Of a stretch of DNA of 42,381 bases, positions 15,990-42,381 are shown piece by piece. Positions within the stretch are counted from its first letter, which is position 1; the number at the start of each line of letters is the position of its first letter. The position numbers and the translations under genes are program-made. The stretch lies in contig NC_068988.1 in assembly GCF_001194135.2 (NCBI RefSeq), positions 93,726,280-93,768,660 on the forward strand. The letters run 5' to 3'. Below the pieces are notes generated by a model. That model had not been told where the DNA came from and searched no databases. It worked only from the letters and a program-made list of their open reading frames with translations. Source of the stretch: Octopus bimaculoides. Taxonomy: Eukaryota.

Positions 15990-16500
15990 TATACGTGATC
16001 TGATCAATAAGTATCTGGATTGTTACAATAGTAACGAAACTAAAGCACGCAGAATCTGCATCAAATTTTGCCAGAAGTTTGGCGATGCCTGCGCAAAGTT
16101 TTCATCGTTCTCGATACAACCAAGGAGATTTTGTACAACCAAAACCCGAGTGTCATTTTGGCCAGCTTAAAGCAGTTTTGGCACTAACACGCGTCTCACA
16201 CCCAAATCTTCAGTGACAACGGACTGACTGAACTGAACTCATCTGCACATCCTCTGATAACTCACGGATGATGATTCGACGATTTCCTCTCCCAGCTGCA
16301 CACATATCTCTGTTTTTCTCAGTTCTGTTGGCTGCGGGTCTCCCAGAAAATCGTCAATATCGACATTCTTTCGGCCATTTTGGAAACGTCTGAACCTCTC
16401 GTACACTTGTGTTCGACTCATATACTCCTCTTCATACACGTTCTGCAACACTGCGTAGGCCTCTGAGCAGGTATCGCCACAACTTTCTCTGTCATGGTCA
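15990..16500. mobile_element. Mariner relics (N-terminal HTH region on the minus strand; TIR-like start on the plus strand)
   Basis: AYAVLQNVYEEEYMSRTQVYERFRRFQNGRKNVD; tacgtgatctgatcaataagtatc followed by RICIKFCQKFG. Confidence 0.75.
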
Positions 16501-16833
16501 ATGCGACGATCACACGCTACACACCTTCCTTCTAAGCAATGCTGTAAACAGCGGAAGTGAGCTAGAACGTTAAAACTTTGTGCGCATGTACAGAAGAATC
16601 CATACGTAGTTACAATGTCAAGAAACAAAAATTTAAAAGAGAGATTCATGAAACTCAGGACTAACATTAAAGTAAAAGGCACATAAAATATTTATTCAAT
16701 CTAATAGAAATAAATAAAAACAAATATTGTCTGAAACTTTCTGTAGTAAATAAAGAGAGAAACAATGAAACCCAAGAGTGAAGGGTGACATTTCATTTGG
16801 GAAGAAGTTATGAAAGTTATAAACATACTGTGA

Positions 16834-18536: not shown

Positions 18537-18608
18537 TCAGGTTATTAACCATTTTTTTCTGATGTGTTTTTCCAGATCTTGAAGTGTTGACCTTTCCTTA
18601 GGCTGAAT
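18537..18608 (-). CDS. Pseudokinase terminal exon O ([23 protein letters not shown])
   Basis: Acceptor atttcttgtttcag; PxxR(P/S)T motif of subdomain XI; TGA at 18537-18539 followed by AT-rich putative 3' UTR. Confidence 0.85.
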   Translation of the reverse strand: MQPKERSTLQDLEKHIRKKWLIT

Positions 18609-19193
18609 CTGAAACAAGAAATAGTAATTATTATTATTATTGTTCAGTAGTTTTATTTTTATAACATGCTTTCACTTCACTACCGAGCGCAGCTCTGTGC
18701 GCCTTGGGTATGTGCTGTGGTTTGCTGTGGTGCTCTTATGTTTACTGTATTGAAAATGTTTTGCATAGAATGTGTGCAGTGCCCAGTAGTGCAATTTTCT
18801 GTATGTTATATATATTTGTAAGTCCTGGTGTTTTTGTTATGTATTTGTCTGAATATTTTTTTTATTATACCTAAGGTACCTACTATGATAGGAATTGCTT
18901 CTGTTTTTAGATTCCATATTCGAGCTACCTCTATTTCCAGGTCTTTGTATTTTGAAAGTTTCTCCATTTCTTTTAGGGAAACGTTGTCATCTGCTGGTAT
19001 TGATACATCAATTAGAAAGCATTTTTTTCCTTCATGATCTTTTACAACTATATCTGGTCTATTGGCCTTAATTTCTCTATCTGTGTGTATTGGCATATCC
19101 CAGAGTATGGTTGCTTTCTCGTTTTCTGTGACCTTTTCTGGCGTGTGTTTATACCATCTTTTTTCTGTTGTTATTCCATAGTGTTGGCATAGC

Positions 19194-19238
<45 letters not shown>

Positions 19239-20467
19239 TTATTTCAACTGTCTGCATGTTCTGAGTTCAAATTCCACTGAGGTCAACTTTGCCCTTCAAC
19301 CACTGGGGTTGATGTGGTCGACTAGTTCCCTCCCCCAAAATTTCAGGCCTTGTGCCTTTAGTAGAAAAGATTATTATTATTGTATTTTATAAAAGAGTGA
19401 CGTAACTCTTCAAGAAGGTAAATAGACAATAAGAAGAGCATGATGCGACTATAATAGATTGAGAATTGAATGGTTTGAGTGATATTTCGATAGCTTGTTT
19501 GTCTTTCTCAAGTTCAAATTGTAAAATGAAAACAACTGCAGAAACACAGAAATTAGAAATATAAATGAGGAAATCCTGTGTTCTTATTTTGATAGCATGA
19601 CATTACATCAGTTTTCAATTTTATAACTGGTAAAAGGAAAAAGAAAAAAAGAAAGAAGAGAAAATAAAAATTAAAAAATATTTAGTTGAACAGTTTTGTG
19701 TCAATGTGATGAAATTCACTTGTCATTTTATTCGTTCCTTCAGGGCGTGATGTCATTAATTCACAAATATATTTGTCCTCGTGCATTTTGAGGACTAAAA
19801 GTGTAGTAGTTTCAGAAAATTTTATGAGAATGTGCACTTTCAGGTGTTCCTCAAAATTGCAGCCACTCGTACATCGAAAGCCCTAAATAAGAGTATATAA
19901 ATATTGAGCTGTAAAATCCCTTTTAGGGAACTCATGTCTCCAGTATACATGACAGATGTTCTACCATTGCACCAAAGCAGCCATTTGAATTTCTTTATCC
20001 ATTTTAGAAACTTTATTCATATCAGTGAGAATTGGATGTTGTTGAAGTCATAAGAATTTATAAACTTTTGAGAGAACATGAAATGAAAACTGATTTTTTT
20101 TTGGAAATGCATCTCAAATTACATATAAAATCATAAATAACAACATGTAAAAAGATAAAATAGTATTGTTAACTTACTATCCAACCATAATGAAGGATGC
20201 ACTTTATCGAACTAGGAGTATAGTTACATTTCCAGCCTCTCTTTGTCATCTAAAACGCAAAGCAAAAACCAAATTAGAGTTATAACCTAATAACACCTAA
20301 AAGGTGAACAGAGTTCATTATTTACATTTGACAGATATTTGTCCTCATCTTGTTTGTTGTTAACACAACGTTTCAGCTGATATAGCCTCCAGCCTTCTTC
20401 AGGTGTCTTGGGGAAATTTCAAATCTGGGTTCTCATTCCTAAGGTATTTTTCGATGTTGTTGTTATT

Positions 20468-20526
<59 letters not shown>

Positions 20527-23500
20527 TGTTATTATTCAGATTACTGCTTGGAATCGAACTCAGAATCTTGGGGTTAGTAGCCTGCGCTCTTAACCACTAC
20601 GCCATATGCCCGTGGGGTCAATTCATTCAACAAAACTTCTTCAGGGTGGTGCCCCAGCATGGTCACAGTATAATGACTGACACAAGTAAAAGATACACGA
20701 TAAAAAAGTATCAGCCATATATATATTTACCTCTCCCCACACTTCCTCCCGTGGCAAGTGTATAAGGTCATCATGGACTACAACTTTGGAGTAGAGCTCC
20801 TTCAGCAAGCAGCAAATACCCCAGACATCAGCATTATTGAAATATTCATAATTAAATTGAAACTGTGAAAATAATAAATTAAAATAATCATAATTAAATC
20901 GAAACTGTAAAAATAATAAATTGAAATAATCATAATTAAATTGAAACTGTAAAAATAATAAACTTTTCCTCATTAGTAATAATATATAATATAAAGGCAG
21001 CGAGCTGACAGAAACATTAGCATGCTAGACGATTTCGTCTGTCTTTACGTTCTGAGTTCAAATTCCACCGGGGTCGACTTTACCTGTCATCCTTTCGAGG
21101 TCGATAAATTAAATACCAGTTGCGTACTGGGGTCGATCTAATCGACTGCCCCATTCCCCCACAATTTCGGGCCTTGTGCCTGGAGTAGAAAAGAATATAT
21201 AATTTTGTCTATTAAACATTGTAACGCTGTGTACGATGTAAGGGAGGTAACTCCCTATTAGTTGCCAAATAAAGTCGACCGTTGGTTGATTAACGTTCTT
21301 TGTAAAATATGTCTTCACATTGTTAATTATGGTTTAATCTATTCCGATCGATCTCTACGCAATTATGCACTTGGCTTTCCTTCAATGTCTGTGTGTGTTT
21401 GTTAGTGTGTTGACAATTAGTACAGTAATAAACCAAGCAGTTAGTGTTGGTTTGTTTACGTCCCCACAATTTAGTGGCAAAGCAAGAAAAAAAAAAGAAA
21501 GAAATCAAAACACATATACAAATGAATAAGTACTAGGCTTTAAAAAAATAAGTCCTTGGGTGGATTTGTTCAATTAAACCCTTCCAGAGAGTACTCCAGC
21601 ATGACCGTAGTCCGATGACTGAAACAAGCAGGTGATAGAAGATAAAAAATATGTACCTTTAATTTTTTTACCTGTTTCAATAATGATTGGACAGCAGGTA
21701 ACAGAATTGGAAATGAAATTCCAGATGTAGAACCAGAACCTGGAATCAAAGGGTCTTAAAGTTGGCCTGGCAAAGACCAAAGCTATGGCATTACTCATCA
21801 TTATCATCGTTTAACGTCTGCTTTCCATGCTGGCATGGGTTGGACGATTTGACTGAGGACTGGTGAACCAGGTGGCTACACCAGGCTCCAATCTGATTTG
21901 GCAGAGTTTCTACAGCTGGATGCCCTTCCTAACGCCAACCACTTCAAGAGTGTAGTGGGTACTTTTACGTGCCACCGGCACAAAGGCCAGTCAGGTGGTA
22001 CTGGCAACGGTCATGCTCAAAATGGTGTATTTTACGTGCTAGTTACTTAGAGATCTTGCCAGTGCTGGTGCCATGTAAAAAGCACCCAGTGCACTCAGTA
22101 AAGGACATCCAGCCATAGAAACCAAGCCAAAACTGACATTGTAACTAGGTGCTGACCTCTGAGGTTGTCAATTACTATCAAACCAGCCCACCCATGCCAG
22201 CATGGCGAAGGGAACATTAAATGATGATGATGATGATGTGTGTGTACATACACACACACACATATGTGTGTGTTTATATATTCTGAGGAAGGTTGAGCAA
22301 CTGCCATCTGTAGCCAGCAGGTATCCGCTACTGAAGATGGGAAAAGACCTAGAAACCATATCCTACTAGTCCTGATAAAGCTGGAGGGGAGTAGCTCGCT
22401 CCCTTTCTCACAATATACCAGACACAGGTTGTGTGTCATTAACCAGTTGTGCCTATTAATATTTTTTTAATATATTTATATATGTATTTAAGGGTCTTTG
22501 TGTTTGTCTCTCACTACTGCTTGACAACCAGTGTTGGTTTGTTTACATCACCATAACTTATCGGTTTGGCAAATAGGGACTGATAGAATAAGTACAAGAC
22601 TTAAAATAACTACTGGCGTAGATTTGTTCAAGGTGGTGCCCCAGCATGGTCGCTGTCCAATAACTGAAACAAGTAAACGATAAAAGATTTTAAATATTCT
22701 CAACAAAACAAAGAATACTTACTTCTGGGGGCAAAATTGTTGGGAATACAAGATTCTTTGTTGTTTCCACGTTCAGGTGTGAAGTGAGAGAAGCTCCCAA
22801 GTGAAAGTTCGTTAACTGTGGAATTCTTTTTTCATTCAATAATAAATTATTAGCTGAAAAACCACAAAGTTAAGCAGATCAGTTTCAGAATGACTGTAAT
22901 GATAAAAATCCCAAATACTATCTCCGCAACTAAATATATATGTAAAGGTAACACACTCAGTCGCATTAACAAAAGGATGTAGGTTCAATTCCCACATGGA
23001 TAGGAAAGCCTTCTTTTTCTGTCAAGGACTTATATGTCCCTTTATTAGACTATTTTCCTTAGTCGTTGCACAGTGATTGCTGTAAGCTATAAGCTAATAT
23101 AAAAATATTGGGTTGTCCAGAAAGTTTGTGCCGATTTTCCAAAAGGTTCTTCTCACTCAACACAGGCACCCCAGGCTAAAGAAGGTCTTCCCCCATTTAA
23201 GGTGCTGTTATCTGTTCGGTAGGATATGTATGAAAGGTTTAGTCCACTTAGAACTTTTAAACTTAAACCAAACGATAACAAAAGAGATCTACTGCGAGCA
23301 GCTTGTGCGGCTTGAGTCAGCGCTAGAAGAAAAACAACTGTCTTTGGTTTTAAGACAAAAGGTATTCTTCCATTAGGATAATGCTCGGCCACATACAGCG
23401 AGGATGACATTCCAAAGGCCGGAGCTGTTTGAATGGGAAACAATGCCTCACTCACCATATTCACTGGACATTGCCGCATCTGATTATCATTTGGATGGAA

Positions 23501-24112
23501 AAAACACGAATTCTGTAGACGAGGTCAGAACAGTACTAGAGGAGTATTGTTCCTCATGGTCAAGTGAATTTTGGGTGAGGGGCCTTGCAAATCTACCAGA
23601 TAGATGTAAGAGCATTGTAGAAAATGAAGGAGAGTATATTTTAGATTAAAAAAGAACTTTGTTTATCTTAATTTTGAAGTATAAAAAACCACATTATTTA
23701 TGGGATGACCCAGTATATGAGCAAAATAATTAAAATATGTTTGTGACATATTTCAATTGCTAAAAGGCAAATTCACTGCAGTTACAATGGTAAAAAGGTG
23801 TTTTTACACCTTTCTATCATAGAGAATTTTTTCTCCATAGTAACTGCAGTAAATTTGTCTTTTAGTACTTGAAATATGTCACTAACATATTTTAACTAAC
23901 CTAAAGATTTTTGCTTCTGCCTAAACTCTGCTNNNNNNNNNNNNNNNNNNNNNNNNNNNNNNNNNNNNNNNNNNNNNNNNNNNNNNNNNNNNNNNNNNNN
24001 NNNNNNNNNNNNNNNNNNNNNNNNNNNNNNNNNNNNNNNNNNNNNNNNNNNNNNNNNNNNNNNNNNNNNNNNNNNNNNNNNNNNNNNNNNNCACACACGC
24101 ACGCACACAAAT

Positions 24113-24143
<31 letters not shown>

Positions 24144-27100
24144 TCTATTGTGTATATGCTAGCTATGAAACTTCTGCAATGGCTACCAGATTCAAATAAT
24201 TGAATGTACAAATTAAATTAAATTCAAAGACTTACATGTCCAAGCTAGAAATAAGATTCCATTTTCATTGAGGTATTTTGCAGCTTCGATTAACATTAAA
24301 ATTATGTCTTTTATTTCGTCAGCATGTAAAGAATTAAGTTTTCTGTGTAATGGTTCTGCAATAGGAATATAACATGAATATACAAATAAACAATGATCTT
24401 CATATTTAAACATAAGACACACACATGCTGAAGATCTTAAATAAGTTAACAAGCTTTGAGGTAACTGCCACCATGGGAAGACAGCACTTATTTTATCACC
24501 ACCGCAACACACACACACACACACACACACAATGGTGGGAGACGCAAAATACAGTTGACATGTTGCTAAGATGAGAAGAGAAAATATAGAGAAGATGATG
24601 TGTGATACATACCACAATAGAACTTGGAACAAAAATAAAGTTCGTTTCTGTTTAGGATAATCCAATTAATTGGGATAATGTATTGATACTGGAGGGAACC
24701 AATCTTCTTTAGAATAGTGAAACATTCGCTCAAGTAATTCTGTTGATGCTGAACATTCTGGCACTGGAATAACAAATGACATTGGCAAATATATAGATAC
24801 ATGCGTGTGCATATAAGTGAATGTGTAGGGTGATAGAGAGATAAAGAGATTTTACAAATTTTCACTTTCTGTTCTCTCTTTTACCTTTTCCCTTTCTCTC
24901 TCCCTCTCTGGTCGTATTTATTTGGTTTGAAGGTGTGGTATTGTTAGGATTTCCTTTGTTAAAATGCTTTGTCTGCCATTTTATGTGACATGAGAGGTGG
25001 TTGATTATTTGCATAAAGAGGAATAAGGCATATATATTCGGAAATTCAACATTGATTGTAGAATTTATTAGGACACTGATGAAGTGAACGTATAACTGCA
25101 TAATGTTTCTACCATGATTATGTAATTATTTCAGCATTTTACTGAAACATGTGTGTGTCCTACAAAGCTTTGAATGCCACATCTGTTTTCTGCTTATTAT
25201 TTTATATATATATATGCGTATGTGTGTGTGTGAGTGCGTGCATGTAGAATCTTTACAGTAGTAACTAGAAGGAATAGACTTACTTTAGTTACTATGACAT
25301 ATTTTTTATTCAGATGCATCAGGTTACTCACTCCACAGATTGGCAACTCTTTTAACTTCACTTTTGTACAATTCTTAACATCGTTTGCGGACTCAAATTC
25401 ACAAGTGTTCGAAAACTGAAACAAGCAAGGTAATAAATAATAATAGTAATAATAATAATAATAACAATAATAATAATGATAATGATAATAACAACAATGG
25501 CATTCTTCTTTTTTTTGCTTTTATATACCTTCTGGAGGAGTTACCTTAATCCTATAAAATATTAATAATAATAATCCTTTCTATTATAGGCATAAGGCCT
25601 GAAATTTGTGGGAAGGTGACAATTCATTATATCGACCCCAGTGTTTCACTGGTACTTAATTTATTGACTCTGAAAGGATGAAAGGCAAAGTTGACCTTAG
25701 CGGAATTTGAACTCAGATTGTGAAGTACCAGGCAGTGGGCCTCACAAAGGCAATGACGAAAGACTGAGACCTCTGGAGATGTGCTGTGACTGCGAAGACC
25801 CGGCAAAGAAAGTGAGTTCACGGCTGTATCCTACACCAGTTTCGCATAACCAGCCCCAGCCCACTCAAAAGTATCTTGGATCCTAGGGCAACCTGCTGTG
25901 CTTGAGGATACCTATTGAGTGAAGTACATCAAAATCAAATGGAAATTGTAGTTGTGATCCCCGTGCCAGTGGCACGTAAAAAGCACCATCCGAAAGTGGC
26001 CGATGCCAGTGCCGCCTTGACAGGCCCCTGTGCCGGTGGCACGTAAAAAGCACCCACTACACTCTCGGAGTGGTTGGCGTTAGGAAGGGCATCCAGCTGT
26101 AGAAACATTGCCAGATCAGACTGGAGCCTGGTGCATCCTCCTGGCTTCCCAGACCCCAGTCGAACCGTCCAACCCATGCCAGCATGGAAAACGGACGTTA
26201 AACGACGATAATGATGATGATGAGTCACCTTTTACTGAACTTCCCAGCATGCAACTTGTCTATTTTAAAATGAAATTCATAGACTGTTGTCACAGACTCA
26301 TCTCAATTAATGAAAAAACTAAATTTTCTTCTTTACCTTAAAGAACTGAGTTGTGTTATCACATTGCACAAATTCTTCAGCTGAATAGATGCATTCCATT
26401 AACTCTTCTTGACTTTGCTTTAATCTGAATAAAGAACAAAAACATGTAAATTGTAGATTTGTTTCATCTTATCATCATCATCATCATCATCATCATCATT
26501 TAATGTCCGCTTTCCATGCTAGCATGGGTTGGACGATTTGACTGAGGACTGGTGAAACCAGATGGCTACACCAGGCTCCAGTCTGATCTGGCAGAGTTTC
26601 TACAGCTGGATGCCCTTCCTAACGCCAACCACTCCGAGAGTGTAGTGGGTGCTTTTACGTGCCACCGGCATGAGGGCCTGTCACGCAGTACTGGCAACAG
26701 CCACGCTCAAAATGGTGTTTTTCACATGGAATTTGTTGAGACAGATTTTCTACAGTAAAGTTTGTTTGTCAACGTAACATGGCAATCCTGGTTTAGAACG
26801 AATATTCCTGTAATTTAGCCCCAGGAGACATCGTCTCCATCTGGCTATACGACACGATCTGTGTCCTTATATTTTTTAAACAAGGGAACCTAGTACCCCC
26901 ACCCAGCTTAAAACAATATCTCTGTATTGCGATTTCCGGGTTCTTTTCCCTCATCAGCACAGAATATAACCAGCTGGAGACGATGTCTGCTGGGGCTAAA
27001 CTACAGCAACATTCATCCTAAACCAGGACGGCCATGTTATGTTGGCAAACAATCTTTACTACAAAGTACTGTTGCTGAATATCTCTCGTGAGATTTACAA

Positions 27101-29038
27101 ATAGTCATTTTCTGTTCATCTTTTATATTTTACTTGATTCTGTCATTAGACTGTGGCCAAATCTACTCATAAGGTTTTGGTCGGCCCCAAGGCTATAGTA
27201 TAAGACACTATGCACAATATGCCACATGGTGGGCCTAATCCCTAAACCATGTGGTTGGGAAGCAAGTTTCTTACCACACAATATATATTATCATTATTAT
27301 TATTATCATTATCATAATTATCATTATCATAATTATCATTATTATTATTATCATTATTATCATTAATATTTGGCAAAAGGGAAGCAAGCTGACAGAATCG
27401 TTGGGCAAAATGCTCAGCGGTATTTCGTCCGTCTTCACATTCTGAGCTCAAATTCCATCGAGGCTGACTTTGCCTTTCATCATTCCGGGGGATCGAGAAA
27501 ATACCAGCTGAACACTGGGGTCGATATAACTGACTTATCCGCCTCCCGCAAATTTCGGGCCTTGTGCCTCTACTAGAAAGAATTAACATTTGGCAGAAGT
27601 AGCAGAGGGATTTTCGGGCTGAGAGTTTTTTGCATCAGCACTTCCCAAAAATAAACTTCCATACTCCCCTCTTTGCTGTGCCCCACCCCGTGTTGGATGC
27701 CAGCTTGCATCTAACTGTTCACCACATCACCCTAACACATAGATTGTGTTTAGCAACCAACTGGTTCCAAGTCAACAATGGAATGTCAACAACAGTCTTA
27801 TCAACATGCTGCACAAAATACCTTTGATCTCACATCTCTCTCTCTTTCACTCACTCTCTCTTTCACTCACTCACTCATGCACTCGCTCTCCCTCTGTCTA
27901 ATTCTTGCAATGAGCATCTGTCAATGATTGTTATTTTTGTCTGCTCCCAGAGGTCAACAAGAATTCAGTGTTATAAACAAACACTTCCCCACCTTTCTCT
28001 CTCTCTCTCCCTCTCAGAGGCTGAGGTAACACAAGTTTGGAACCTTTGTTCTCAAGATAATAATATAAATGACGTACCTTCTTGAGAACTGTGTACAACC
28101 AGTAGCTTTACAAGCAATTTCTTTGCATTTAAGACAGTGTTCTAACAGGACACTAAGTGTATGGCTGTCCTCAAGACCAAGATGTCTGTTCTGGATATTC
28201 TCCTGTAAAGTTTTCACGTATTTTTTGCCCTGTAAATTGATGAAATAGCACAAAAAAGCGTTCTGCTATTAGTAAAAACTAGGAATTTGAAGAACTTCAT
28301 AAAGAGGAAGCAACAAAATCAATAAACAAAAATAAATGTATGGCAAGCGTGCTGGTGGCACATAAACGCACCCCGGAGTCATGTAAATGGCACCCATGCC
28401 AGTGGTACGTGAAAGCACCCGTTGCACTCTCAGAGTGGTTGGCATTAGGAAGAGCATCCGACCATGCCAACCACTCTGAGAATGTAGTGGGTGCTTTTAC
28501 GTGCCACCGGCATGAGGGCCAGTCAGGCAGTACTGGCAACGGCCACGCTCAAAATGGTGTATTTTACGTGCCACCTGCACAGGAGCCAGTCCAGGGGCAC
28601 TGGCAACAAACTCACTTCGGATTTAAAACACTGGATGATGATGATGATGATGAGTAGTGTATGTATGTGTATGTTTATATTCGTGTGTATAGGCGAATGT
28701 GTGTGTGTAACTATCACTTTCATATTTGTAAGAGATTACATGGAAGAGTTGAGTGCATGTATGTATGTATATACAGCTCCCCCTCCTCTCCAACTGTACA
28801 CCACATCACAATCCACGCATTGTGTGTTTAACAACCAACTGGTTCAAGTCAACAACAGCATGTCAAGTGCAGTCTTAACATGCTGGGAAAACTGCCTTTA
28901 ACTCTCTCTCTTTCTCACTCACCCTCCCTCTATCTAATTCCTGTAATGTGTATGTGTCAGTGATTGTTATTTTTGTTTGGACACATCACTCCACCTTTCC
29001 TCCCTGACATCAACAATTCAGCCAATCCAGTGTTATAA

Positions 29039-29119
<81 letters not shown>

Positions 29120-32000
29120 AACACCAGTACAAGTATTTGGTGATCTTTCCACTTATTCAGCCGCTAACCTCTCAATTGTTATTTCATCTGTTTTTCCAGG
29201 TTAGAATGAGTCAAACAAAACTTGTTGACGCAGATTCTCTACAGCCAAAATGCTCCACAGTGTCGCACCTTGGGCAAGGGTCTTCCACTGAAATATTTTC
29301 CAGACATGTTTCCACAAAATATTACAAATGAACGACACGACACTAATTACTGCAGTAGGACATAGACACTCATTAACAATTATCATGTGACATTCAAGAC
29401 AAGGACACACAGACACACACAACATACAGGAGAAACAAAATGGAATTCACGGAAAATGGAATTTATGGAATTCACCATGATCCTTTTGAGCCATCATGCA
29501 CCAGTACCTAGCAGGTGTGATGCTGTGCGAAGACTTGAGATGCATCTCCTTGAGTAACTTTTCATAAAGTTACCTTGTTTTTACTCGCTGTTTCGCTAGT
29601 TTCTGTAACAATGCATTTTGGAGACAGTACGCTGCAATTACCAAAAATGTATTTCTATAGAAATAAGTGAAATAGAGAATTAAAAAAATGAGATGTTTTT
29701 CAAAAGCCACCTGAGGAGATGCATTGACACCTACAATGCATCACAACTATTTATACAGTATCTCACCCGCAAGGTATCAGTGTATGATGAACCAAAACGA
29801 TTGTAGTGGTTCTGAATAACAAGTCACATGAACTCCATTTTCTTTCCCTCATATATTTTATAAACTCTATGGATATGAAAAGATTCCTGAAGGAAATCCA
29901 GTGGCACATACCTCCAAACTGTTGTTGACATCAGGTAGCCAAATACTCTGGAAACAATAGCTGTATACCCAAATATAAAATTACTACATATATATCATAT
30001 ATATATATAAGACAAGTGAGATGTTGTAAGGTCGTATCAGTTTAGCAATAAACAATGAAGCAGTCACAAAACAAACAGTAAGGCTTAATACTTACTTCAA
30101 TACAATCTTCATCGGAACACGCATCGAACTGGCAGAGAAAAGCTTTGTTTAATTTGTTTCTGAAAACCTCGTAACTTGAGATGGATTTGTTCTATAAAAG
30201 AGATTACACAGTTAGAGATTACAGAGAGGGAGAGAGAGAGAGCATGCAAAAGGTGTGTGTGTGTGTGCGTGAGTGTGTGTGTGTGTGAGTGTGTGTGTGT
30301 GCATAGGCATGGTTAGAGGTCTAGGTTGTTGCAATATCTTGTTCTATATCTTGATGGCAAATTTGAAGTCTTTGGCACTACATAGTGGCACCCTGTTCTA
30401 GTTTTATTTTAACTCTCGATGCCAAGGTTTGGGACAAGTCCCTTTAGGATCTCCCAGTTGTATATTATGTCATATCTTTCTCGCCTACGCTCTAAGGAAT
30501 AGAGTTTTAATCGCTTGAGTCTATCCCAGTAGCTTATCTGCTGCATAGAGGATATCTTCTTTGTGTAGCTTTGTTGGATTGCCTCAAGTTCTGCAATTAA
30601 TTTGACACTGGTTGGTGACCATAGCTGAGAGCAATAGTCAAAGCGGCTTAGGACTAGTGTCCTCCAGAGGACCATCATGGTTCCCTGATTTCTCTCTTTA
30701 AATGTTCTAAGAATCCATCCAGTCAGCCGCCTGCATTTCATTGCCAATTTAGCAACATGCACATGGAAGGATGCATCATTACTCATGTAAATGCCCAGGT
30801 CTCGCACTGACTGAGTCTCTGGGATTGCAATCCCTCCAGGTCCTGTGTATTTAATTGGTATTGCATTTAGTTTTGCATGCTGATAGCACAAAGCTTGAAA
30901 CTTTTCAGCATTAAACTGCATGCTATTCTTCTCAGCCCATTTGTATATTTCATCCAACTCACGTTGCAGGTGCATAGCATCTTCAGGGTTCTGTATCACC
31001 TGTGAGACTTTTGTATCATCTGCATAACTTGTGACAATGGCCTTCTGTGTGGCTGAGGGCATATCTGAGAGGGCCATTATGAACAGTAGTGGTTCCAAAA
31101 CAGTGCCTTGTGGAACATCGCTCATTATTTGTGTGTCATTGGTTACTACCACCTGATTTCTATCCTTCAGAAAGTCATGTAGCCATTCTCCCAAACTATA
31201 CCGAGATCATGTAGCTTGGGACATATCATTCCATGATTGACTATATCGAAGACCTTCGCAAAGTCGAGATATATCACATCTACATATGAGTGGTTGAGCA
31301 GCTGTTTCAGCACCCAGTCATAGTGTTATAAGAGCCGAATGAGGCAGCTTCTTCTTTGTTGTCGATGAATGGTTGAATGACCAAATCCAAGCTCCTCTGC
31401 TAGTTCCTCAACAGTTACGATGGGATTTTGTTCCACCAGGGTTTGCAGGATGTTCTTGTCGAGCCCCACAGATCATCCAGGATGAGGCTCATCTAGGCTG
31501 TAGTTTCTGGCTTGAAATATATACACACATATATACACATATATATATACATACACACATATATATATATACACACACACATATATATACACACATATAT
31601 ACACATATATATATATACACATATATATATATATATACACATATATATATATACACATATATATATACACACATACATATATATACACACATATATACAC
31701 ACATATATATATATACACATACACACACACATATTTATTTGAAAAAATGATTAGAGATGGCTTTTGGGGGCGTAATTTTTATTTTAATGATATAATGTTC
31801 ACAGCTTCTCTAATGAGTTTTGACCTTTTCGATGGCTGTTTTAAAACTGGAATTCTTTGGTTTAGAAGTTGTTTAAAGAATTTCAATACTGAATTTTGAC
31901 AAAAATGATTACAAATGTATAAAACTTACCATTTCTACACTGCCCAACTGAATAAAATCTGTAAAATAAATGAAATCTTATTTAGTCAAGAAACAATAAT

Positions 32001-32066
<66 letters not shown>

Positions 32067-34754
32067 NNNNNNNNNNNNNNNNNNNNNNNNNNNNNNNNNN
32101 NNNNNNNNNNNNNNNNNNNNNNNNNNNNNNNNNNNNNNNNNNNNNNNNNNNNNNNNNNNNNNNNNNNNNNNNNNNNNNNNNNNNNNNNNNNNNNNNNNNN
32201 NNNNNNNNNNNNNNNNNNNNNNNNNNNNNNNNNNNNNNNNNNNNNNNNNNNNNNNNNNNNNNNNNNNNNNNNNNNNNNNNNNNNNNNNNNNNNNNNNNNN
32301 NNNNNNNNNNNNNNNNNNNNNNNNNNNNNNNNNNNNNNNNNNNNNNNNNNNNNNNNNNNNNNNNNNNNNNNNNNNNNNNNNNNNNNNNNNNNNNNNNNNN
32401 NNNNNNNNNNNNNNNNNNNNNNNNNNNNNNNNNNNNNNNNNNNNNNNNNNNNNNNNNNNNNNNNNNNNNNNNNNNNNNNNNNNNNNNNNNNNNNNNNNNN
32501 NNNNNNNNNNNNNNNNNNNNNNNNNNNNNNNNNNNNNNNNNNNNNNNNNNNNNNNNNNNNNNNNNNNNNNNNNNNNNNNNNNNNNNNNNNNNNNNNNNNN
32601 NNNNNNNNNNNNNNNNNNNNNNNNNNNNNNNNNNNNNNNNNNNNNNNNNNNNNNNNNNNNNNNNNNNNNNNNNNNNNNNNNNNNNNNNNNNNNNNNNNNN
32701 NNNNNNNNNNNNNNNNNNNNNNNNNNNNNNNNNNNNNNNNNNNNNNNNNNNNNNNNNNNNNNNNNNNNNNNNNNNNNNNNNNNNNNNNNNNNNNNNNNNN
32801 NNNNNNNNNNNNNNNNNNNNNNNNNNNNNNNNNNNNNNNNNNNNNNNNNNNNNNNNNNNNNNNNNNNNNNNNNNNNNNNNNNNNNNNNNNNNNNNNNNNN
32901 NNNNNNNNNNNNNNNNNNNNNNNNNNNNNNNNNNNNNNNNNNNNNNNNNNNNNNNNNNNNNNNNNNNNNNNNNNNNNNNNNNNNNNNNNNNNNNNNNNNN
33001 TTTATAACGTTGACCACTAAGGGATGGGATAAACGACCTGCTTATTCTTAGTGCAAGGTTTGAAGAGTGCAGTTCGATTTTCAGTTATTTTTTCAAAGCT
33101 ATAATGGAAGTGACAAAGGAGTATATTTAGCATATTTTGCTTTATGAATTCAATAAAGGCAATAATGCAATGGAAAATGTGAGGAATATTAATGCAATAT
33201 ATGGGGATCGGACAATAAGTGTAAACCAATGGCAACGGTGGTTCCAGAAATTCCAAGCCAGAAACTACAGCCTAGAAGATGAGCCTCGTCCTGGATGATT
33301 TGTAGGGCTCGACAAGAACATCCTGCAAACCCTGGTGGAACAAAATCCCATCGCAACTGTTGAGGAAAAATTTTGAAACCATACAGATGGTTTAATAGAA
33401 AAATTTGAAATGAAGGCAGCTTATGTTATTGTAACGACATATCAGGACTCATAAGAGCTTGGCTTAAATTACGACCCTAGTGAGTGGAGGCTATCCATAA
33501 ACACTTCGGTTTATAATACTAAAGCTGTGCTACTGCACACAGGTAATAAAGTTCTGTCAATTCTTGTAGCTCTTTCTGTTGTCCGAAAGGAAACGTACAA
33601 AAGTTTATCATTCATATTAGGTTGTATAAGATATAATGAGCAGAAATAGTTGATTTGTGCATACTTGAAAATCTTAGCAATTGAAGTGGCTTACAGGCTG
33701 GATTTACTAAGTACATGTGCTTTTTGTGTCTGTGGGATGGCCGTACTCAGGAAGAGCATAATATCCGTAGTGAATGGTCATTGAGAAATGAGTCAGAAAT
33801 TAGTTCACATAATGTTATACGTGAACCATTGCATATTAAATTAGGCCTTATCGAACAGTTTATTAAGAAGTTAAATCTAGAAGAGCTACCATTTTTGTAC
33901 TTGAAAACTAAGTTTTTCCCAAACTAAGTTTTTCCCAAACTAAGTTTTTTTCCAAACTAAGCCATGTGAAAATCAAAGAAGGGGGATTTGTTGGTCCCCA
34001 AATTCGGCAACTTTTGACAGAAGATAATTTTGAAAACACCTTAAATGTATTGGAACTGGATGCATGGCAAAGTTACAGAAATGTATGGAATGGTCTATTT
34101 GGGAAGTCCAGAGCAGTCAACTATGAAGTACTTTTACAAGAGTTAATTGATTCATACAAATCATTAGGGTGTAATATGTCATTAAAAGTTCATTATTTCC
34201 AATCGCATCTAGCATTAGTTCTTCAGAATGCAGCAGACGTCAGCAATGAACATGGTGAGAGATTCCACCAAGACATAAGTCAAATGGAAACTCGATATAA
34301 GGGGATGTGGAGTCCTGCCATGCTTGTTGACTTTTGATATTTTCTTCAGAGAGATAGACCTGATGCTATACATAGAAAGAAACATAAACATTGTACTAAA
34401 AAATAGATGTTCTTCTTTTAACAAAAGATGCAGATAACGTATTCATTATCAATAACAACCCATTTTGCAGAAAACTCACTTTAGTTCTAGGAAAAAAATG
34501 TTATTTTCACAGAAAATGGCTCACTTTCTAGCAAAAACACATCATTTAGTGACGGCCCATTTTATGAAACACTGGAATCATTTCATGAAAAATGGAGTTC
34601 ATTTTGGTTATCTTTGGTAAAAACTGTTCCAGAAAATGATGTTCTCTTCTCTGTAGCAAAATGATTGTTGTACAATGTTATTAATTATAAATTTATGAAT
34701 TTGCCTTTTGGGCTTTAATGCTTGCTGGCCACCTATATTATTGTTGTTTTTATT

Positions 34755-34795
<41 letters not shown>

Positions 34796-37700
34796 TCTTT
34801 ATATATATATATTATATCATTATCATCATCCTTTAACATCTGTTTTCTATGCTGGCATGGGATGGACGGTTTGACCAGAGCTGCTTTCAGAACAACCTCC
34901 ACCACTGCTAACTCGGTCACCTAAGTAACAGAAACTGTCTACTAAATCTAAGAATCCCTCTGGACATTCAAAGTTGTCTATTTTCTGTACATTCCTGGAG
35001 TTTAACCCTTTCATTATTTCGAGATGCTCTGTGTTTCTTTCAATTACTTTAAATATAACAAAGAATTTAGTAAAAGAACTTAGTTATCATTCAGCTAGTG
35101 TCAGGAACATAAATTGGGACTAAGGTTTGGTGGAAGATTTTAATTCAAAACTTATGAAAACAAGATATTTGTACTCAGAGCCAGTTTCAGCCGGTTTGGT
35201 CACGAAAGGGTTAATGTATCTGTGCATCAGCCACATATAAAGTCTACTTTCTCTGTTGACTTTCCATTGATACTGTTGCACCTCTTGTGTGTTCATAGCT
35301 TGTACTAAGTACACCATATGAAATTTCTACTGAGACCTTTTATACATATCGAGCAGGGCCATTTCCCTGAAGGAATCTATGACTTGTCTGTTTTCCTACT
35401 TATTAGGGACTTTGATCTTTGCTAAATTATTTCTAAATCCTTTTGATTCCAGATCTTGCTTCCATACATGAAATTTCTTCTCTACTTCTGGTAGTGATTC
35501 AGCAATAAGAACAAGGTCATTGGCATAGAGGAGTTCCCAAGGACAGTCTTAGATTCCTCTGTTATAGCCTGGAGACTATGATAAAGCAAAGGGGGCTGAG
35601 AACTGATTGGTGGTGGACTCCTACTTGTACCCTAAATACCTTGCTATACTCATTGGTGACCTTCACCTTTCTGACAGCATTTCTGTTCATGGCTTTCACA
35701 GCTTTCAACAACCACTAATCTATCCTTAGATTCCACAATGCCCATATTAATCATGATTAGCTCCATACAGATTTTTAGTCTTATCTTCATTCTGATTGTT
35801 AATCTTACCTTCATACAGGTTATTAGTCTTATCAGAAAATATGAATTTATATTTTGAACTTTTAAAATTTCTAATATCAGAACAAAATCTGAAAGTCAAC
35901 GTAAGTAATAAGATAACGAATGTCTCCCCCCCACCCCCCACCGCTATAAAAATGCCCTAACAGTGGCTTCAGATGTAAGATATATTATTAATTTTATTTC
36001 CTAATATAATAATAAGCAAAGTGTTTTTATAAATTTGTATATATAAATATTTATCCAGAATCATGAGAATGGATGAGGATAGCTGCCTGAAAAAGTGCCA
36101 CACCCTAACAGTTGAGGGAACCCGTGGAAGAGGTAGGCCCAGGAAGACCTGGGCTGAGGTGGTGAGGCAAGATCTTCGTACATTGGGCCTCACCGAGGCG
36201 ATNNNNNNNNNNNNNNNNNNNNNNNNNNNNNNNNNNNNNNNNNNNNNNNNNNNNNNNNNNNNNNNNNNNNNNNNNNNNNNNNNNNNNNNNNNNNNNNNNN
36301 NNNNNNNNNNNNNNNNNNNNNNNNNNNNNNNNNNNNNNNNNNNNNNNNNNNNNNNNNNNNNNNNNNNNNNNNNNNNNNNNNNNNNNNNNNNNNNNNNNNN
36401 NNNNNNNNNNNNNNNNNNNNNNNNNNNNNNNNNNNNNNNNNNNNNNNNNNNNNNNNNNNNNNNNNNNNNNNNNNNNNNNNNNNNNNNNNNNNNNNNNNNN
36501 NNNNNNNNNNNNNNNNNNNNNNNNNNNNNNNNNNNNNNNNNNNNNNCGTTGCCAGTATCGCCTGACTGGCCTTCGTGCAGGTGACACGTAAAAGCACCTA
36601 CTACACTCTCTGAGTGGTTGGCGTTAGGAAGGGCATCCAGCTGTAGAAACTCTGCCAAATTTAGATTGGAGCCTGGTGTTGCCATCCGGTTTCACCAGTC
36701 CTCAGTCAAATCGTCCAACCCATGCTAGCATGGAAAGCGGACGTTAAACGATGATGATGTTGATGATGAATCACACCGGACGCAGAGGAGGAGAGAAAAT
36801 AGTAATTCAGAGAAGGAGAAGTAGTGAGAGTAATAGCCCTGACTGAGAGGGAGTGAGAGAAAGAAAGCAGTAGCAATGAGAGAAAGGAAGGGGTGGTAGA
36901 TGAATAAGGAAGTAAGGGGTGAAAAAAAAATCAATGTTTCAACTCTGTGTGAGTATATGTGTGCATGTGTGTGCGTGTACAAGGGAAGTATGTGTATGTT
37001 TGTGTGTGTGATTATTATGTACCATATTTTGAACCTTATTTATATATAAAATACAATTAGCCATCATTAGTGACAGCACATGGTCATCTAGTTATTAATA
37101 ATATACTTGTATATTTATTTATAACTTATTCACTTAGTTTCTTTATGTATGTGCCTCAGGCCATCAAACGAACAAGCAAGCATGGCTGAGGGGCATATGT
37201 TTAAATTTGACTTATCTAGCAGCAAGCTTAACCAAAGATGGGAGAAGAATCTATAATTCAAAGCCCGAAATCGGTTTTAAGCTATCTGCCATTTCCTCTG
37301 TGACCTTTGCAAAGGTAGGAGCCTAATTTTTATTCCTTGCTCGATTTATCACCATGCTTCATCATAAACTGAGCTCTTTCTAGCTTCTAAGGTCTCTTGA
37401 CTCCTATGCATATATACATATTCTTTTACTTGTTTTATTCTTTGACTGTGGCCATGCTGGATCACCGCCTTTAGTCGAACAAATCAACAGCAGGACTTAT
37501 TCATTGTACGCCCAGTACTTATTCTATAAAAAGCACCATCCAAACATGGCCGTTGCCAGTCTCCTCTGGCCTCTGTGCCGGTGGCATGTAAAAAGCACCC
37601 ACTACACTCACGGAGTGGTTGGCACTAGGAAGGGCATCTAGCTGTAGAAACATTGCCAGATCAGACTGGAGCCTGGTGCAGCCTCCTGGCTTCCCAGACC

Positions 37701-38601
37701 CCAGTCGGACCGTCCAACCCATGCCAGCATGGAAAGCAGACGTTAAACAATAATGATGATGATGATATGTCTGTGTGTGTGTGTGTGTGTGTGCACGTGT
37801 GTGTTACACACACACACACACACATACATGTATGTGTATAGAGTGCACCTCAACAGAAAGGAAGAGTGTTAGAGTAAATAACTGCATGTGCAGTGTTGAG
37901 GGGTTAAAGCGTGATAGGAGGGACAGGAACAGTTTTGTTCTTGTGAAGGTCTCCAAGGCAACCTAAACAAAAGGGGCCAAGAGAAATAACTCAAACATGT
38001 TAACAACATGAATTTGGATAACAAATAGGTGAATGTTTTTTTTTCTGTTTGTTTTGTTTTTTTCTTATTTGTTTCAACCATTGGACAGCAGCAATGCAGG
38101 AGTCGATTCATTCAACTACAATTGTTTAAGATGGGTGCTCCATTTTGGCCACAGTCTAATGACCGGAACAAGCAAGAGATAAAAGATGTGTAATAAATTT
38201 ACTTACTCGTATAACACGGTGTCGACTTCTCTTTAATTATGTCCAAAAGACTCTTCAGACTGCTTTCTGTGAAGCATACGCTGCTGCCCATACTATCGCT
38301 ATTCAAGCATTCTTTACTTACATCCATTTTTTCAACACTTTTCAAATTTAAGGAAAACTTTAAAGATTTCTTCAGAATGGCTCTGTTGAGTTCTTTCAAA
38401 CATAGAACAATATTTTGGTTATCCACACCGGCTAAACTAATATAGGGTGGATCTTCATCAATAGAACAGTATTGATAGTGAGCATTTTGCTGCTCCGAGG
38501 AAGATTTTTGCTGGTCCATGTGTTGTAAGGATTTCAAGCTTTTGCAGATATTTCCAAAACCAGAGAATTTGTTAAAAGTTACTTCAAGAAGATCTTTGAA
38601 A
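18537..38601 (-). CDS. Multi-exon gene (15 coding exons found) encoding a probable pseudokinase: about 330 aa unassigned N-terminal region plus C-terminal TK/TKL-like kinase fold; 5' end not resolved
   Basis: 15 exons, each flanked by a polypyrimidine-AG acceptor and (except the last) a GT donor, with matching intron phases, give one stop-free frame of 576 codons plus TGA. Kinase landmarks appear in order: YVIVTK (beta3 Lys), SECF (alphaC Glu), ELYFCSKFY (beta5/hinge), [22 protein letters not shown] (alphaE/catalytic loop), QLTNFHLG (DFG position), LPPE (APE), [13 protein letters not shown] (alphaF), [19 protein letters not shown] (alphaH-alphaI). Confidence 0.88.
18625..19170 (-). mobile_element. 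5'-truncated R4/Dong LINE (endonuclease domain plus 3' UTR) flanked by (TAA)n
   Basis: [16 protein letters not shown]...[26 protein letters not shown]; TAA repeats at both ends. Confidence 0.9.
20178..20249 (-). CDS. Pseudokinase exon N (72 nt; [24 protein letters not shown])
   Basis: Acceptor tttttgctttgcgttttag, donor GTAAGT, phase 0/0; TK/TKL-like alphaH. Confidence 0.88.
20362..20407 (-). ncRNA. Minimal type I hammerhead ribozyme motif (Penelope-like element type)
   Basis: Minus strand: GACAC CUGAAGA A GGCUG-loop-CAGCU GAA AC GU U GUGUU. Stem I GACAC/GUGUU, stem II GGCUG/CAGCU, palindromic ACGU stem III. Confidence 0.65.
20543..20612 (-). mobile_element. tRNA-like SINE head (not a functional tRNA)
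   Basis: A box TGGCGTAGTGG and B box GAGTTCGATTCC, but no proper acceptor stem; runs into (GAT)n. Confidence 0.7.
20731..20862 (-). CDS. Pseudokinase exon M (132 nt from the proximal acceptor; [23 protein letters not shown]...VWGE)
   Basis: DVWG alphaF motif; donor GAG/GTAAAT; three in-frame acceptors would start the exon at 20862, 20904 or 20946. Confidence 0.88.
20837..20962. repeat. 3 x 42-bp tandem repeat spanning an intron/exon junction
   Basis: Units 20837-20878, 20879-20920 and 20921-20962. Confidence 0.97.
20996..21197 (+). mobile_element. Family B SINE copy
   Basis: Head ggcagcgagctg, B box gagttcaaattcc, Deu/Nin-like core; a similar copy lies at 27375-27580. Confidence 0.8.
21797..22020 (+). 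mobile_element. Family C interspersed repeat (associated with RTE 3' ends; (CAT)n at one end)
   Basis: ttccatgctggcatgggttggacg...gatgcccttcctaacgccaaccac; copies at 25960-26222, 26470-26725, 28340-28650, 36547-36770 and 37530-37765. It follows the RTE C-terminal fragment across the gap at 36203. Confidence 0.8.
22723..22853 (-). CDS. Pseudokinase exon L (131 nt; [19 protein letters not shown]...LPPE)
   Basis: Acceptor gtggtttttcag, donor GTAAGT; phase 1 in, phase 0 out; matches subdomains VIb-VIII. Confidence 0.9.
23106..23715 (+). mobile_element. Internally deleted DD34D mariner element
   Basis: TA-bounded imperfect TIRs; DNARPH...[12 protein letters not shown] with 34 residues between the two Asp. 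Confidence 0.9.
24236..24355 (-). CDS. Pseudokinase exon K (120 nt; PLHRKL...NGILFLAWT, alphaD-alphaE-catalytic loop)
   Basis: Acceptor attcctattgcag, donor GTAAGT, phase 1/1; kinase alphaE pattern [13 protein letters not shown]. Confidence 0.9.
24613..24763 (-). CDS. Pseudokinase exon J (151 nt; CQNVQ...[10 protein letters not shown], alphaC-beta5)
   Basis: Acceptor tttgttattccag, donor G/GTATGT; phase 0 in, phase 1 out. Confidence 0.85.
25284..25415 (-). CDS. Pseudokinase exon I (132 nt; FSNTCEFES...KKYVIVTK, beta3 strand)
   Basis: Acceptor cttgcttgtttcag, donor GTAAGT, phase 0/0. Confidence 0.85.
26337..26424 (-). CDS. Pseudokinase exon H (88 nt; [11 protein letters not shown]...TTQFFK)
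   Basis: Acceptor tttttgttctttattcag, donor AAG/GTAAAG; phase 2 in and phase 0 out bridge exons G and I. Confidence 0.82.
26752..27061. mobile_element. MITE with about 95-bp imperfect TIRs (Tc1/mariner-pogo-like TA-CAGT left end)
   Basis: agtaaagtttgtttgtcaacgtaacatggc...ccatctggctata is the reverse complement of tataaccagctgg...gttggcaaacaatctttact. Confidence 0.85.
27706..27985 (+). repeat. Dispersed repeat, direct copy 1 (copy 2 at about 28790-29045)
   Basis: Shared blocks caccacatcac, caaccaactggttc.aagtcaacaa, tgattgttatttttgt and cagtgttataaacaaac. Confidence 0.75.
28078..28229 (-). CDS. Pseudokinase exon G (152 nt; GKKYVKTLQ...GCTQFSR)
   Basis: Acceptor tttcatcaatttacag, donor AG/GTACGT; phase 0 in, phase 2 out. 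Confidence 0.8.
29574..29654 (-). CDS. Pseudokinase exon F (81 nt; [10 protein letters not shown]...TASKNK)
   Basis: Acceptor cttatttctatag, donor AAG/GTAACT, phase 0/0. Confidence 0.7.
29767..29811 (-). CDS. Pseudokinase exon E (45 nt; [15 protein letters not shown])
   Basis: Acceptor cttgttattcag, donor GTGAGA, phase 0/0. Confidence 0.7.
29912..29947 (-). CDS. Pseudokinase exon D (36 nt; [12 protein letters not shown])
   Basis: Acceptor attgtttccag, donor GTATGT, phase 0/0. An alternative AG 13 nt upstream would be out of frame. Confidence 0.7.
30096..30191 (-). CDS. Pseudokinase exon C (96 nt; [10 protein letters not shown]...SDEDCIE)
   Basis: Acceptor ctcttttatag, donor GTAAGT; only frame 0 is open. 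Confidence 0.8.
30330..31360 (-). mobile_element. CR1/L2-group LINE reverse transcriptase fragment
   Basis: [56 protein letters not shown]. Confidence 0.93.
31365..31515 (-). mobile_element. Mariner N-terminal fragment
   Basis: [29 protein letters not shown]. Confidence 0.85.
31517..31732. repeat. Compound (TA)n/(CA)n microsatellite
   Basis: Direct reading. Confidence 0.97.
31930..31958 (-). CDS. Pseudokinase exon B (29-nt micro-exon; (N)FIQLGSVEM)
   Basis: Acceptor tttattttacag, donor GTAAGT; phase 1 in and phase 0 out bridge exons A and C exactly. Confidence 0.75.
33104..33367 (+). mobile_element. Mariner N-terminal HTH fragment
   Basis: [13 protein letters not shown]...[21 protein letters not shown]. 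Confidence 0.9.
33480..34400 (+). mobile_element. Decayed DNA transposase, probably CMC/Chapaev3-like
   Basis: [58 protein letters not shown]. The transposase call is firm; the superfamily is from memory. Confidence 0.75.
34885..35750 (-). mobile_element. RTE-clade LINE RT fragment interrupted by a piggyBac-like MITE
   Basis: VQVGVH...[15 protein letters not shown]...WKQDLESKG, then after the [24 protein letters not shown]. Confidence 0.88.
35002..35214. mobile_element. piggyBac-like MITE
   Basis: TTAA-CCCTTTC ... GAAAGGG-TTAA. Confidence 0.85.
36063..36202 (+). mobile_element. RTE LINE C-terminal fragment
   Basis: [27 protein letters not shown]. Confidence 0.9.
38207..38601 (-). CDS. Pseudokinase exon A (395 nt; FKDLLEVTF...KEKSTPCYT)
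   Basis: Acceptor ttttccttttcag, donor GTAAGT, open frame throughout (overlaps ORF 38199-38537); phase 2 in, phase 1 out. Confidence 0.8.
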
Positions 38602-42284: not shown

Positions 42285-42306
42285 TACATGCACGCGCGCG
42301 CACGCG

Positions 42307-42381
<75 letters not shown>
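42285..42381. repeat. (CG)/(CA)n microsatellite
   Basis: Direct reading. Confidence 0.99.

Follow-up and report, generated by a model that had tools for sequence, protein, structure and literature searches.

LOC106869522 has twelve coding exons on the minus strand

We analyzed a 42,381-nucleotide stretch of the Octopus bimaculoides genome (NCBI RefSeq assembly GCF_001194135.2, contig NC_068988.1, forward-strand positions 93,726,280 to 93,768,660), hereafter the window, in whose coordinates all positions are given. Its minus strand carries LOC106869522, a gene whose product joins a zinc finger resembling the TAZ2 domain of CBP and p300 to a protein kinase fold with a degenerate active site. 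The window is AT-rich (38% GC), with many microsatellites and transposon fragments, and contains six runs of N, three of them within 18537-38601. No long open reading frame (ORF) spans this region. Coding exons, placed by tblastn of the O. sinensis and Argonauta hians proteins against the window, run on the minus strand from 38519 to 18537; there are 12, all with GT-AG boundaries of good consensus, and when spliced they yield an open coding sequence (CDS) of 1488 nt specifying 495 amino acids. By exact look-up, this translation is identical to RefSeq XP_014770778.1, "uncharacterized protein LOC106869522 isoform X2." The gene is thus O. bimaculoides LOC106869522, for which a RefSeq model has existed for years.

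The exons, all on the minus strand, partition the protein as follows. The first main coding exon (38207-38601), 395 nt from an acceptor at 38601, contains the isoform X2 ATG at 38519 and encodes residues 1-105, which are 92% identical to those of O. sinensis. Exon 2 (31930-31958), only 29 nt long (residues 105-114), recurs in the proteins of O. sinensis and Argonauta as well as in genomic DNA of the former. Exon 3 (30096-30191; residues 115-146) supplies the first helix of the TAZ2-like domain and a C134-x4-C139-x4-C144 triad, and exon 4 (28078-28229; residues 147-197) adds helices 2-3 and a complete H177-x3-C181-x4-C186-x4-C191 zinc site, after which exon 5 (26337-26424; residues 197-226) encodes the linker from this domain to the kinase N-lobe. 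The kinase fold begins in exon 6 (25284-25415; residues 227-270), which covers beta1-beta3, including a degenerate Gly-loop (PICGVSNLM) and the beta3 Lys270 (VIVTK), and proceeds through exon 7 (24613-24763; residues 271-321) from alphaC to beta5; both exons have clean junctions. Exon 8 (24236-24355; residues 321-361) encodes alphaD/alphaE and the start of the catalytic loop, FLAWT, with Ala358, and ends, one base beyond its last full codon, at a GTAAGT donor at 24236. Exon 9 (22723-22853; residues 361-404), with acceptor TTTTTCAG at 22853 and a GTAAGT donor, contributes SNN, NFH (Asn376), and PPE (Glu404). Exon 10 (20731-20862; residues 405-448) bears the alphaF ADVWG (Asp416), exon 11 (20178-20249) encodes residues 449-472, and the last exon, 12 (18537-18608), encodes residues 473-495, among them the subdomain XI Arg478, and the stop codon.

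Two of the three N runs (32067-33000 and 36203-36546) lie in intron 1 and the third (23933-24091) in intron 8, the intron bridged by the FLAWT|S junction within the catalytic loop. Alignment to the proteins of O. sinensis and Argonauta is colinear and lacks no residues, so no coding sequence is hidden in these gaps.

Isoform X1 (542 aa) has one extra 5' exon, at 42231-42289 on the minus strand, joined to the acceptor at 38601, for a total of 13 exons. We located it by mapping the isoform X1 sequence to the window; it reads MYVYCVLISVSGTLFLLRN followed by AG, with donor CAG|GTCAGC. An earlier note on this stretch, written from the sequence alone, had described a hidden multi-exon gene here that is invisible as one ORF, and the spliced model bears out its strand and extent, with the splicing of isoform X1 to 38601 explaining the start coordinate it gave. 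The extremes of exon size it reported, 29-395 nt, recur exactly in the exons at 31958-31930 and 38601-38207. Its count of 15 exons gives way to 12 coding exons (13 with 42289-42231), the same 12 being found in O. sinensis, and the stretch before the kinase domain is about 245 aa long instead of 330; the earlier exon set and N-terminus probably include some false in-frame candidates. Nor is the gene hidden, given its RefSeq annotation.

The C-terminal domain is a kinase fold lacking catalytic residues

Residues 256-487 match the Pfam Pkinase profile (PF00069; positions 16-260 of 263) with 44 bits (E = 2.4e-11), above the gathering cut-off of 31.7 bits, which places the protein in the kinase superfamily. 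GxGxxG is absent, the Gly-loop position reading PICGVSNLM. The catalytic loop is FLAWTSNN (356-363), in which the HRD Asp is replaced by Ala358 and the loop Asn363 is kept, and DFG is replaced by NFH (376-378), with Asn376 in place of Asp. Residues that are retained include the beta3 Lys270 within VIVTK, the PPE at 402-404 with Glu404, the alphaF ADVWG with D416, and the subdomain XI Arg478. By sequence, a protein counts as a pseudokinase when the beta3 Lys, the HRD Asp, or the DFG Asp, or more than one of them, has been lost; the octopus protein falls within this definition through Ala358 and Asn376, with Lys270 retained. The motifs listed in the earlier note (no Gly loop, FLAWTSNN, NFH, beta3 Lys, PPE, DVWG, and subdomain XI Arg) are right in every item, and so is its designation of the protein as a pseudokinase that has lost the Gly-rich loop and both Asp residues while keeping the residues that anchor the fold. 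AlphaFold2, supplied with an alignment of 18 family members, predicts a kinase fold with a predicted local distance difference test score (pLDDT) above 90 in the C-lobe, and Foldseek relates the model to many kinase structures at probability 1.0. We infer from the substitutions that the protein would be without phosphotransfer activity.

The domain shows little affinity for any one kinase group. Its Pfam scores are nearly equal for Pkinase (44 bits) and PK_Tyr_Ser-Thr (41.7 bits), and a profile of the family finds JAK1, NEK1, MAP3K2, PLK2, BTK, PTK6, and MELK in the PDB at nearly equal E-values (about 1e-23 to 1e-25), so that the best matches are scattered over the TK, NEK, STE, PLK, and CAMK groups. 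Foldseek matches are similarly mixed (PAK4, CDKs, CSK, Lyn, MST3, RET, and NEK1). Neither MLKL nor RIPK is among the 60 best sequence-profile matches or the 50 best structural matches. Judged by these profiles and models, the kinase domain appears to belong to no group in particular, and placement with TKL, RIPK, or MLKL is unsupported. The O. vulgaris copies (CAI9727026-8) are named "NEK protein kinase," which looks like automatic transfer from a best hit: NEK1 is indeed among the best PDB matches of the family profile (E = 2.5e-24), but the NEK catalytic residues are absent here, and JAK1, MAP3K2, PLK2, BTK, PTK6, and MELK score the same.

A TAZ2-like zinc finger precedes the kinase fold

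The N-terminal part of the protein divides into a poorly ordered segment (residues 1-115, pLDDT below 50, with two predicted helices) and a Cys-rich helical module at approximately residues 120-200, encoded by exons 3-4 and tied to the kinase fold by a linker of about 45 residues. Seven Cys/His residues of this module, spaced C-x4-C-x4-C ... H-x3-C-x4-C-x4-C, are invariant in 18 family members. When a profile of the module built from these 18 sequences was compared with the 177,635 sequences of the PDB, the only significant matches were to TAZ2 of p300/CBP (15 distinct sequences, best E = 6.9e-11); TAZ1 was matched only at E of about 5. The best alignment runs the full length of the domain (positions 8-83 versus 19-94), with the helices, the seven ligands, and a CPVP[FW]C stretch in register, giving whole-domain similarity to the TAZ zinc finger (PF02135) by way of the family profile. 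Among the matched entries are complexes of TAZ2 with p53, p63, p73, STAT1, C/EBP-epsilon, and NUT peptides.

Structure prediction points, with modest scores, in the same direction. AlphaFold models contain three to four helices in the module at pLDDT 84-95, in O. sinensis and likewise in a 222-aa fragment from a cephalopod, and for the latter the seven best Foldseek matches are all TAZ2, at probabilities of 0.35-0.90 (five at 0.69-0.90), template modeling (TM) scores of 0.30-0.55 normalized to target length, and root-mean-square deviations of 3.1-4.7 A. By these comparisons the Cys-rich region is a TAZ2-like zinc finger, predicted to bind zinc. The earlier note had set aside an unassigned, Cys-rich, probably helical N-terminal region, a description that holds for its composition and helicity and is superseded in part by this assignment. 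Like CBP/p300 TAZ2 (PF02135; PDB 7xfg, 3t92, 2mh0, 1f81), the module is a helical domain of about 75 residues with the same ligand spacing and CPVP[FW]C stretch; unlike it, only the third zinc site is complete, and the context is a dead kinase and not an acetyltransferase. In animals, TAZ domains are not known from proteins other than CBP/p300.

The domain pairing is conserved from octopus to starfish

A word-indexed search with the kinase part returned two orthologues, O. sinensis LOC115215143 (497 aa) and a homologue from Argonauta hians (495 aa). This type of search is insensitive: it missed O. sinensis when queried with the 106-aa product of exon 1, at 92% identity, and when queried with the 18-member alignment it retrieved nothing beyond the two octopod proteins and some generic kinases, missing gastropod and bivalve members that the alignment itself contains, so its negatives do not indicate absence. 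A profile of the two octopod sequences, run with HMMER exhaustively against 1.84 billion representative proteins, yielded 118 proteins at E <= 0.001. The best matches after the octopods are proteins of 760-1130 aa, to whose C-terminus query residues 123-497 align in a single stretch. They come from gastropods (Gigantopelta, LOC121371901; Aplysia, LOC101845767; Babylonia; Haliotis; Lymnaea; Littorina; Candidula; Nucella), bivalves (Mercenaria, Argopecten, Saccostrea, Dreissena), the brachiopod Lingula (LOC106181796), and the starfish Acanthaster (LOC110983315) and Patiria (LOC119730755), and nearly all are annotated "uncharacterized."

The 18-member alignment has 17 invariant columns. Seven are the Cys/His residues of the TAZ2-like module, and the others include a W replacing the Leu of HRDL, the APE Glu, the D-x-W-G of alphaF, and the subdomain XI Arg. 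In a wider set of 26 members, the two starfish proteins among them, the active site follows the pattern [YF]L[N/x]W...N and N[FL]x. The HRD Asp is absent from all 26, its position being occupied mostly by Asn, in cephalopods by Ala, and occasionally by Leu, Tyr, or His; at the DFG Asp position, 24 members have Asn and two keep the Asp. The octopus protein and 18-26 relatives thus share a signature consisting of C-x4-C-x4-C ... H-x3-C-x4-C-x4-C followed by [YF]L.W for HRDL, N[FL]x for DFG, PPE/APE, SD.WG..C, and an invariant Arg. Because the HRD Asp is missing throughout these 26 members, the loss of catalysis would be ancestral to a family that predates the protostome-deuterostome split.

Long-form relatives share both the TAZ2-like module and, after it, the degenerate kinase domain, but the non-cephalopod members, at 760-1130 aa, differ from the octopus protein in possessing a long, disordered, Ser-rich N-terminus with conserved short motifs. 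These are S-LPD[LV]V, [RK]xSSGYG[TS]G, which is kept even in starfish, and [DE][LIV]PxLSI[FM]. Cephalopods are without the first two, and the octopus protein has a possible remnant of the third (DPPYISL, residues 23-29). As judged from the alignments, the family is an old bilaterian one whose proteins are shortened in cephalopods. The D2 degron of PER2, which is similar to the beta-TrCP motif, reads SSGYGS (PMC11223080); by analogy, the long forms may be turned over by SCF-beta-TrCP.

Selection and expression

We rebuilt the O. sinensis CDS from its genomic locus, where it occupies the same 12 exons with identical lengths except in exon 1. The ratio of nonsynonymous to synonymous divergence (dN/dS) between the two species is 0.18 (Nei-Gojobori; bootstrap 0.11-0.28), being 0.10 in the N-terminal half (exons 1-5) and 0.33 in the kinase half (exons 6-12). 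The overall value indicates purifying selection on the gene, not decay. The motif blocks, moreover, are invariant in Argonauta at 61% overall protein identity.

Synonymous divergence (dS) is uneven, at 0.35 for exons 1-5 and 0.13 for exons 6-12, on small counts (35 and 18.5 synonymous differences, respectively), and dN is about equal (0.036 and 0.041). Synonymous sites of the kinase half may conceivably be constrained, for instance by RNA structure or editing.

A more distant cephalopod orthologue of 514 aa, reading FLAWTTEN, NFHMG, VPPE, and ADVWG at the corresponding positions, is encoded by a contiguous CDS on Logan contigs of 1-2.6 kb, which points to spliced mRNA in another cephalopod lineage. 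On one such contig (405-1954), the frame is split into overlapping ORFs of 222 and 302 aa, and on another it is uninterrupted over 514 aa; the split may stem from an indel introduced in assembly, from alternative splicing, or from variation at the RNA level.

Function and alternative explanations

We consider it probable that the LOC106869522 protein comprises a poorly ordered N-terminus of ~115 aa, a TAZ2-like domain, and a dead kinase fold, and that it acts as a non-catalytic adaptor; we are surer of the architecture than of the adaptor mechanism. The TAZ2 domain of CBP/p300 docks short amphipathic transactivation-domain peptides, and the TAZ2-like domain would likewise dock short amphipathic peptide motifs of partner proteins. 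The rigid kinase fold would then offer a second binding or switching surface, and the protein, phosphorylating nothing, would work as an adaptor. A scaffold or switch function, as put forward in the earlier note, remains a reasonable conjecture given the lost motifs and the dN/dS of 0.18.

Several observations weigh against this account. The inactivity of the kinase fold, zinc binding, and the existence of binding partners are predictions, and some proteins without canonical catalytic residues still bind ATP or catalyze reactions. The spliced-mRNA support comes from another cephalopod lineage and not from O. bimaculoides itself. At the N-terminus, residues 1-128 match nothing in the PDB at E <= 10, and residues 1-115 have no Pfam match. 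NCBIfam, also searched, gave no match. For the zinc finger, the Foldseek E-values against TAZ2 are weak (0.24-1.5), and the Pfam zf-TAZ cut-off of 25 bits is not reached: the best member scores 14.5 bits (E = 0.03-0.05), and sub-threshold matches (E < 1) occur in five of the 18 members, with the octopus proteins not among the matches shown. Of the three canonical HCCC zinc sites, only one (H177/C181/C186/C191) is complete, whereas site 1 (C134/C139/C144) is without its His, the family having Arg/Lys there, and site 2 is gone. A single-sequence phmmer search with the octopus segment finds no TAZ2 match, and comparison of a cephalopod-only profile with one TAZ2 sequence by HHalign is not significant (P = 0.008, probability 5%). 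Because the octopus segment alone misses TAZ2, the assignment is transitive, resting on the family profile, and because the zinc sites are incomplete, the domain is to be called TAZ2-like.

A rival idea is that the resemblance is convergent Cys/His spacing and that the module is a family-specific zinc ribbon bracing the kinase N-lobe, not a homologue of the CBP/p300 domain. In its favor, two of three canonical sites are degenerate, zf-TAZ stays below the Pfam threshold, and both the cephalopod-only comparison and the Foldseek E-values are weak. Spacing would have to account, however, for a profile match at E = 7e-11 over the whole domain, with helices and seven ligands in register and the C-P-V-P-[FW]-C stretch included, for the recovery of TAZ2 and only marginally TAZ1 from among 177,635 PDB sequences, and for an independent structure prediction that ranks TAZ2 first to seventh; we regard convergence as unlikely. 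Somewhat less credit still goes to the view that the protein retains activity, as an atypical kinase or some other enzyme that uses ATP, with other side chains compensating for the missing Asp residues. The conservation of the beta3 Lys270 and the catalytic-loop Asn363, the invariant alphaF Asp and subdomain XI Arg, and the DFG Asp retained by two family members would suit such an enzyme, and the strong constraint on FLAWTSNN/YLNWTSxN suggests that this surface still does something. Yet none of the members has the catalytic base (the position is taken by Asn, Ala, Leu, Tyr, or His), the Mg-binding Asp is Asn in 24 of 26, cephalopods lack a Gly-rich loop, and no compensating acidic residue is evident in the alignment.

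That the locus is a decaying former kinase gene, from which the Gnomon model merely strings together open exons, is very improbable. High divergence (118 of 1.84 billion representative proteins at E <= 0.001) and introns full of transposon fragments would fit decay, but the 495-codon frame is intact over 12 exons with consensus splice sites, the same exons exist in O. sinensis, motif blocks invariant in Argonauta are recognizable in starfish, another cephalopod has transcript-like contigs, and dN/dS is 0.18. The earlier note had named neutral dN/dS and relatives with an intact HRD as signs of a decaying kinase; neither was found, the HRD Asp being missing from every member examined and the DFG Asp kept in two of 26. 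We attach next to no weight to a TKL pseudokinase of the MLKL/RIPK type, with an N-terminal helical executioner domain released by a dead-kinase switch, as suggested by the note's TKL-like classification and loose comparison with MLKL. The likeness, a non-catalytic C-terminal kinase fold after a helical region, is superficial and gains no support from any tool result. The four-helix bundle and brace helices that precede the MLKL pseudokinase find no match here: the Cys-rich helical region aligns to TAZ2, residues 1-128 have no PDB relative, and the kinase domain, with MLKL and RIPK outside the 60 best profile and 50 best structural matches and no preference for TKL in Pfam, PDB profile, or Foldseek results, is no nearer to MLKL/RIPK than to many other kinases.

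A further comparison is with KSR1/2, kinase-fold scaffolds that carry a zinc-binding Cys-rich module N-terminal to the kinase fold. The octopus protein shares the zinc-type Cys-rich module before a kinase fold, and the long family members share a disordered Ser/Thr-rich region. KSR, however, has a C1 domain in this position and keeps both the HRD and the DFG Asp, whereas here the module is TAZ2-like and the Asp residues are lost; Pfam and PDB searches returned no C1 or KSR match.

The gene itself is already public, pseudokinases are a known kind of protein, and the reconstruction in the earlier note mostly recovers the RefSeq model. New here are the identification of the Cys-rich region as TAZ2-like and the recognition that this finger and the dead kinase form a conserved module from octopus to starfish. 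The earlier note had accepted a match to an already described gene family as grounds against its claim; this is half the case, in that a RefSeq model exists but the gene and its relatives are annotated as uncharacterized. The family has no name in Pfam or NCBI annotation, and literature searches found no paper on these loci, on a pseudokinase in cephalopods, or on a TAZ-kinase architecture.

More tentatively, and with more doubt than belief, we suggest that the family could be an ancient bilaterian signaling adaptor that molluscs, brachiopods, and echinoderms possess and vertebrates apparently lack, and that couples a TAZ2 domain to a dead kinase; transactivation-domain-like motifs would be read by a pseudokinase switch, and the long forms would be destroyed via a PER2-type SSGYG[ST] beta-TrCP degron. 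If so, it would represent a new pseudokinase class and the first TAZ domain known from animals to function outside an acetyltransferase context. Should the main account hold, the metazoan kinome would gain a pseudokinase family missed by vertebrate-centered catalogues. That account would also supply a testable binding hypothesis, the docking of amphipathic peptides in the TAZ2 groove, and allow the misleading O. vulgaris name "NEK protein kinase" to be corrected. The cephalopod proteins, as a natural truncation without the long regulatory N-terminus, are convenient for expression and structural work.

Additional features of the locus

Several candidate exons were considered and rejected. Those at 19882-19720 and 19626-19607 have good splice sites and an open frame yet are absent from all orthologues, and a C-terminal model that includes them and omits 20862-20731 scores 29 bits against Pfam Pkinase, under the threshold. 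Three candidates in intron 3 (29947-29912, 29811-29767, and 29654-29574) are in frame and were found in no orthologue.

At the start of exon 10, a 42-nt tandem repeat (20836-20962, minus strand; three copies, 92% matches) duplicates the acceptor (TTTTTACAG) together with the opening codons. Each copy preserves the frame, and the annotated isoforms splice to the last; an upstream acceptor, if used, would add 14 or 28 aa. O. sinensis has two copies, at about 59830-59945 of its locus sequence.

The N-terminal extension of isoform X1 amounts to 47 aa, of which 19 derive from the 42231-42289 exon; the remainder are encoded by the beginning of the 38601 exon, ordinarily left untranslated. The extension starts directly after a microsatellite, a (GT)n run at 42310-42381, and the long isoform of O. 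vulgaris does not share it; it may be 5' untranslated sequence misread as coding.

The 12 coding exons extend over 54 kb in O. sinensis (10001-64036 of its locus sequence) versus 20 kb in O. bimaculoides (18537-38519), reflecting either much larger O. sinensis introns or repeats collapsed in the gapped O. bimaculoides assembly, which has three intron gaps of estimated size. Mobile-element remnants include a reverse-transcriptase fragment (RVT_1, E = 6e-10) in intron 2 at 30412-31194 on the minus strand, a mariner-type transposase DDE fragment (E = 1e-7) in intron 8 at 23113-23373 on the plus strand, and, downstream of the gene, a Mos1-type helix-turn-helix domain (E = 3e-6) at 16242-16682 on the minus strand. 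A 213-aa ORF at 11064-11702 on the minus strand contains many hydrophobic stretches (MNTLLVAIIFFQTASVLSYASIL...) and has zero Pfam match; it could be an exon of a neighboring membrane-protein gene or a chance ORF.

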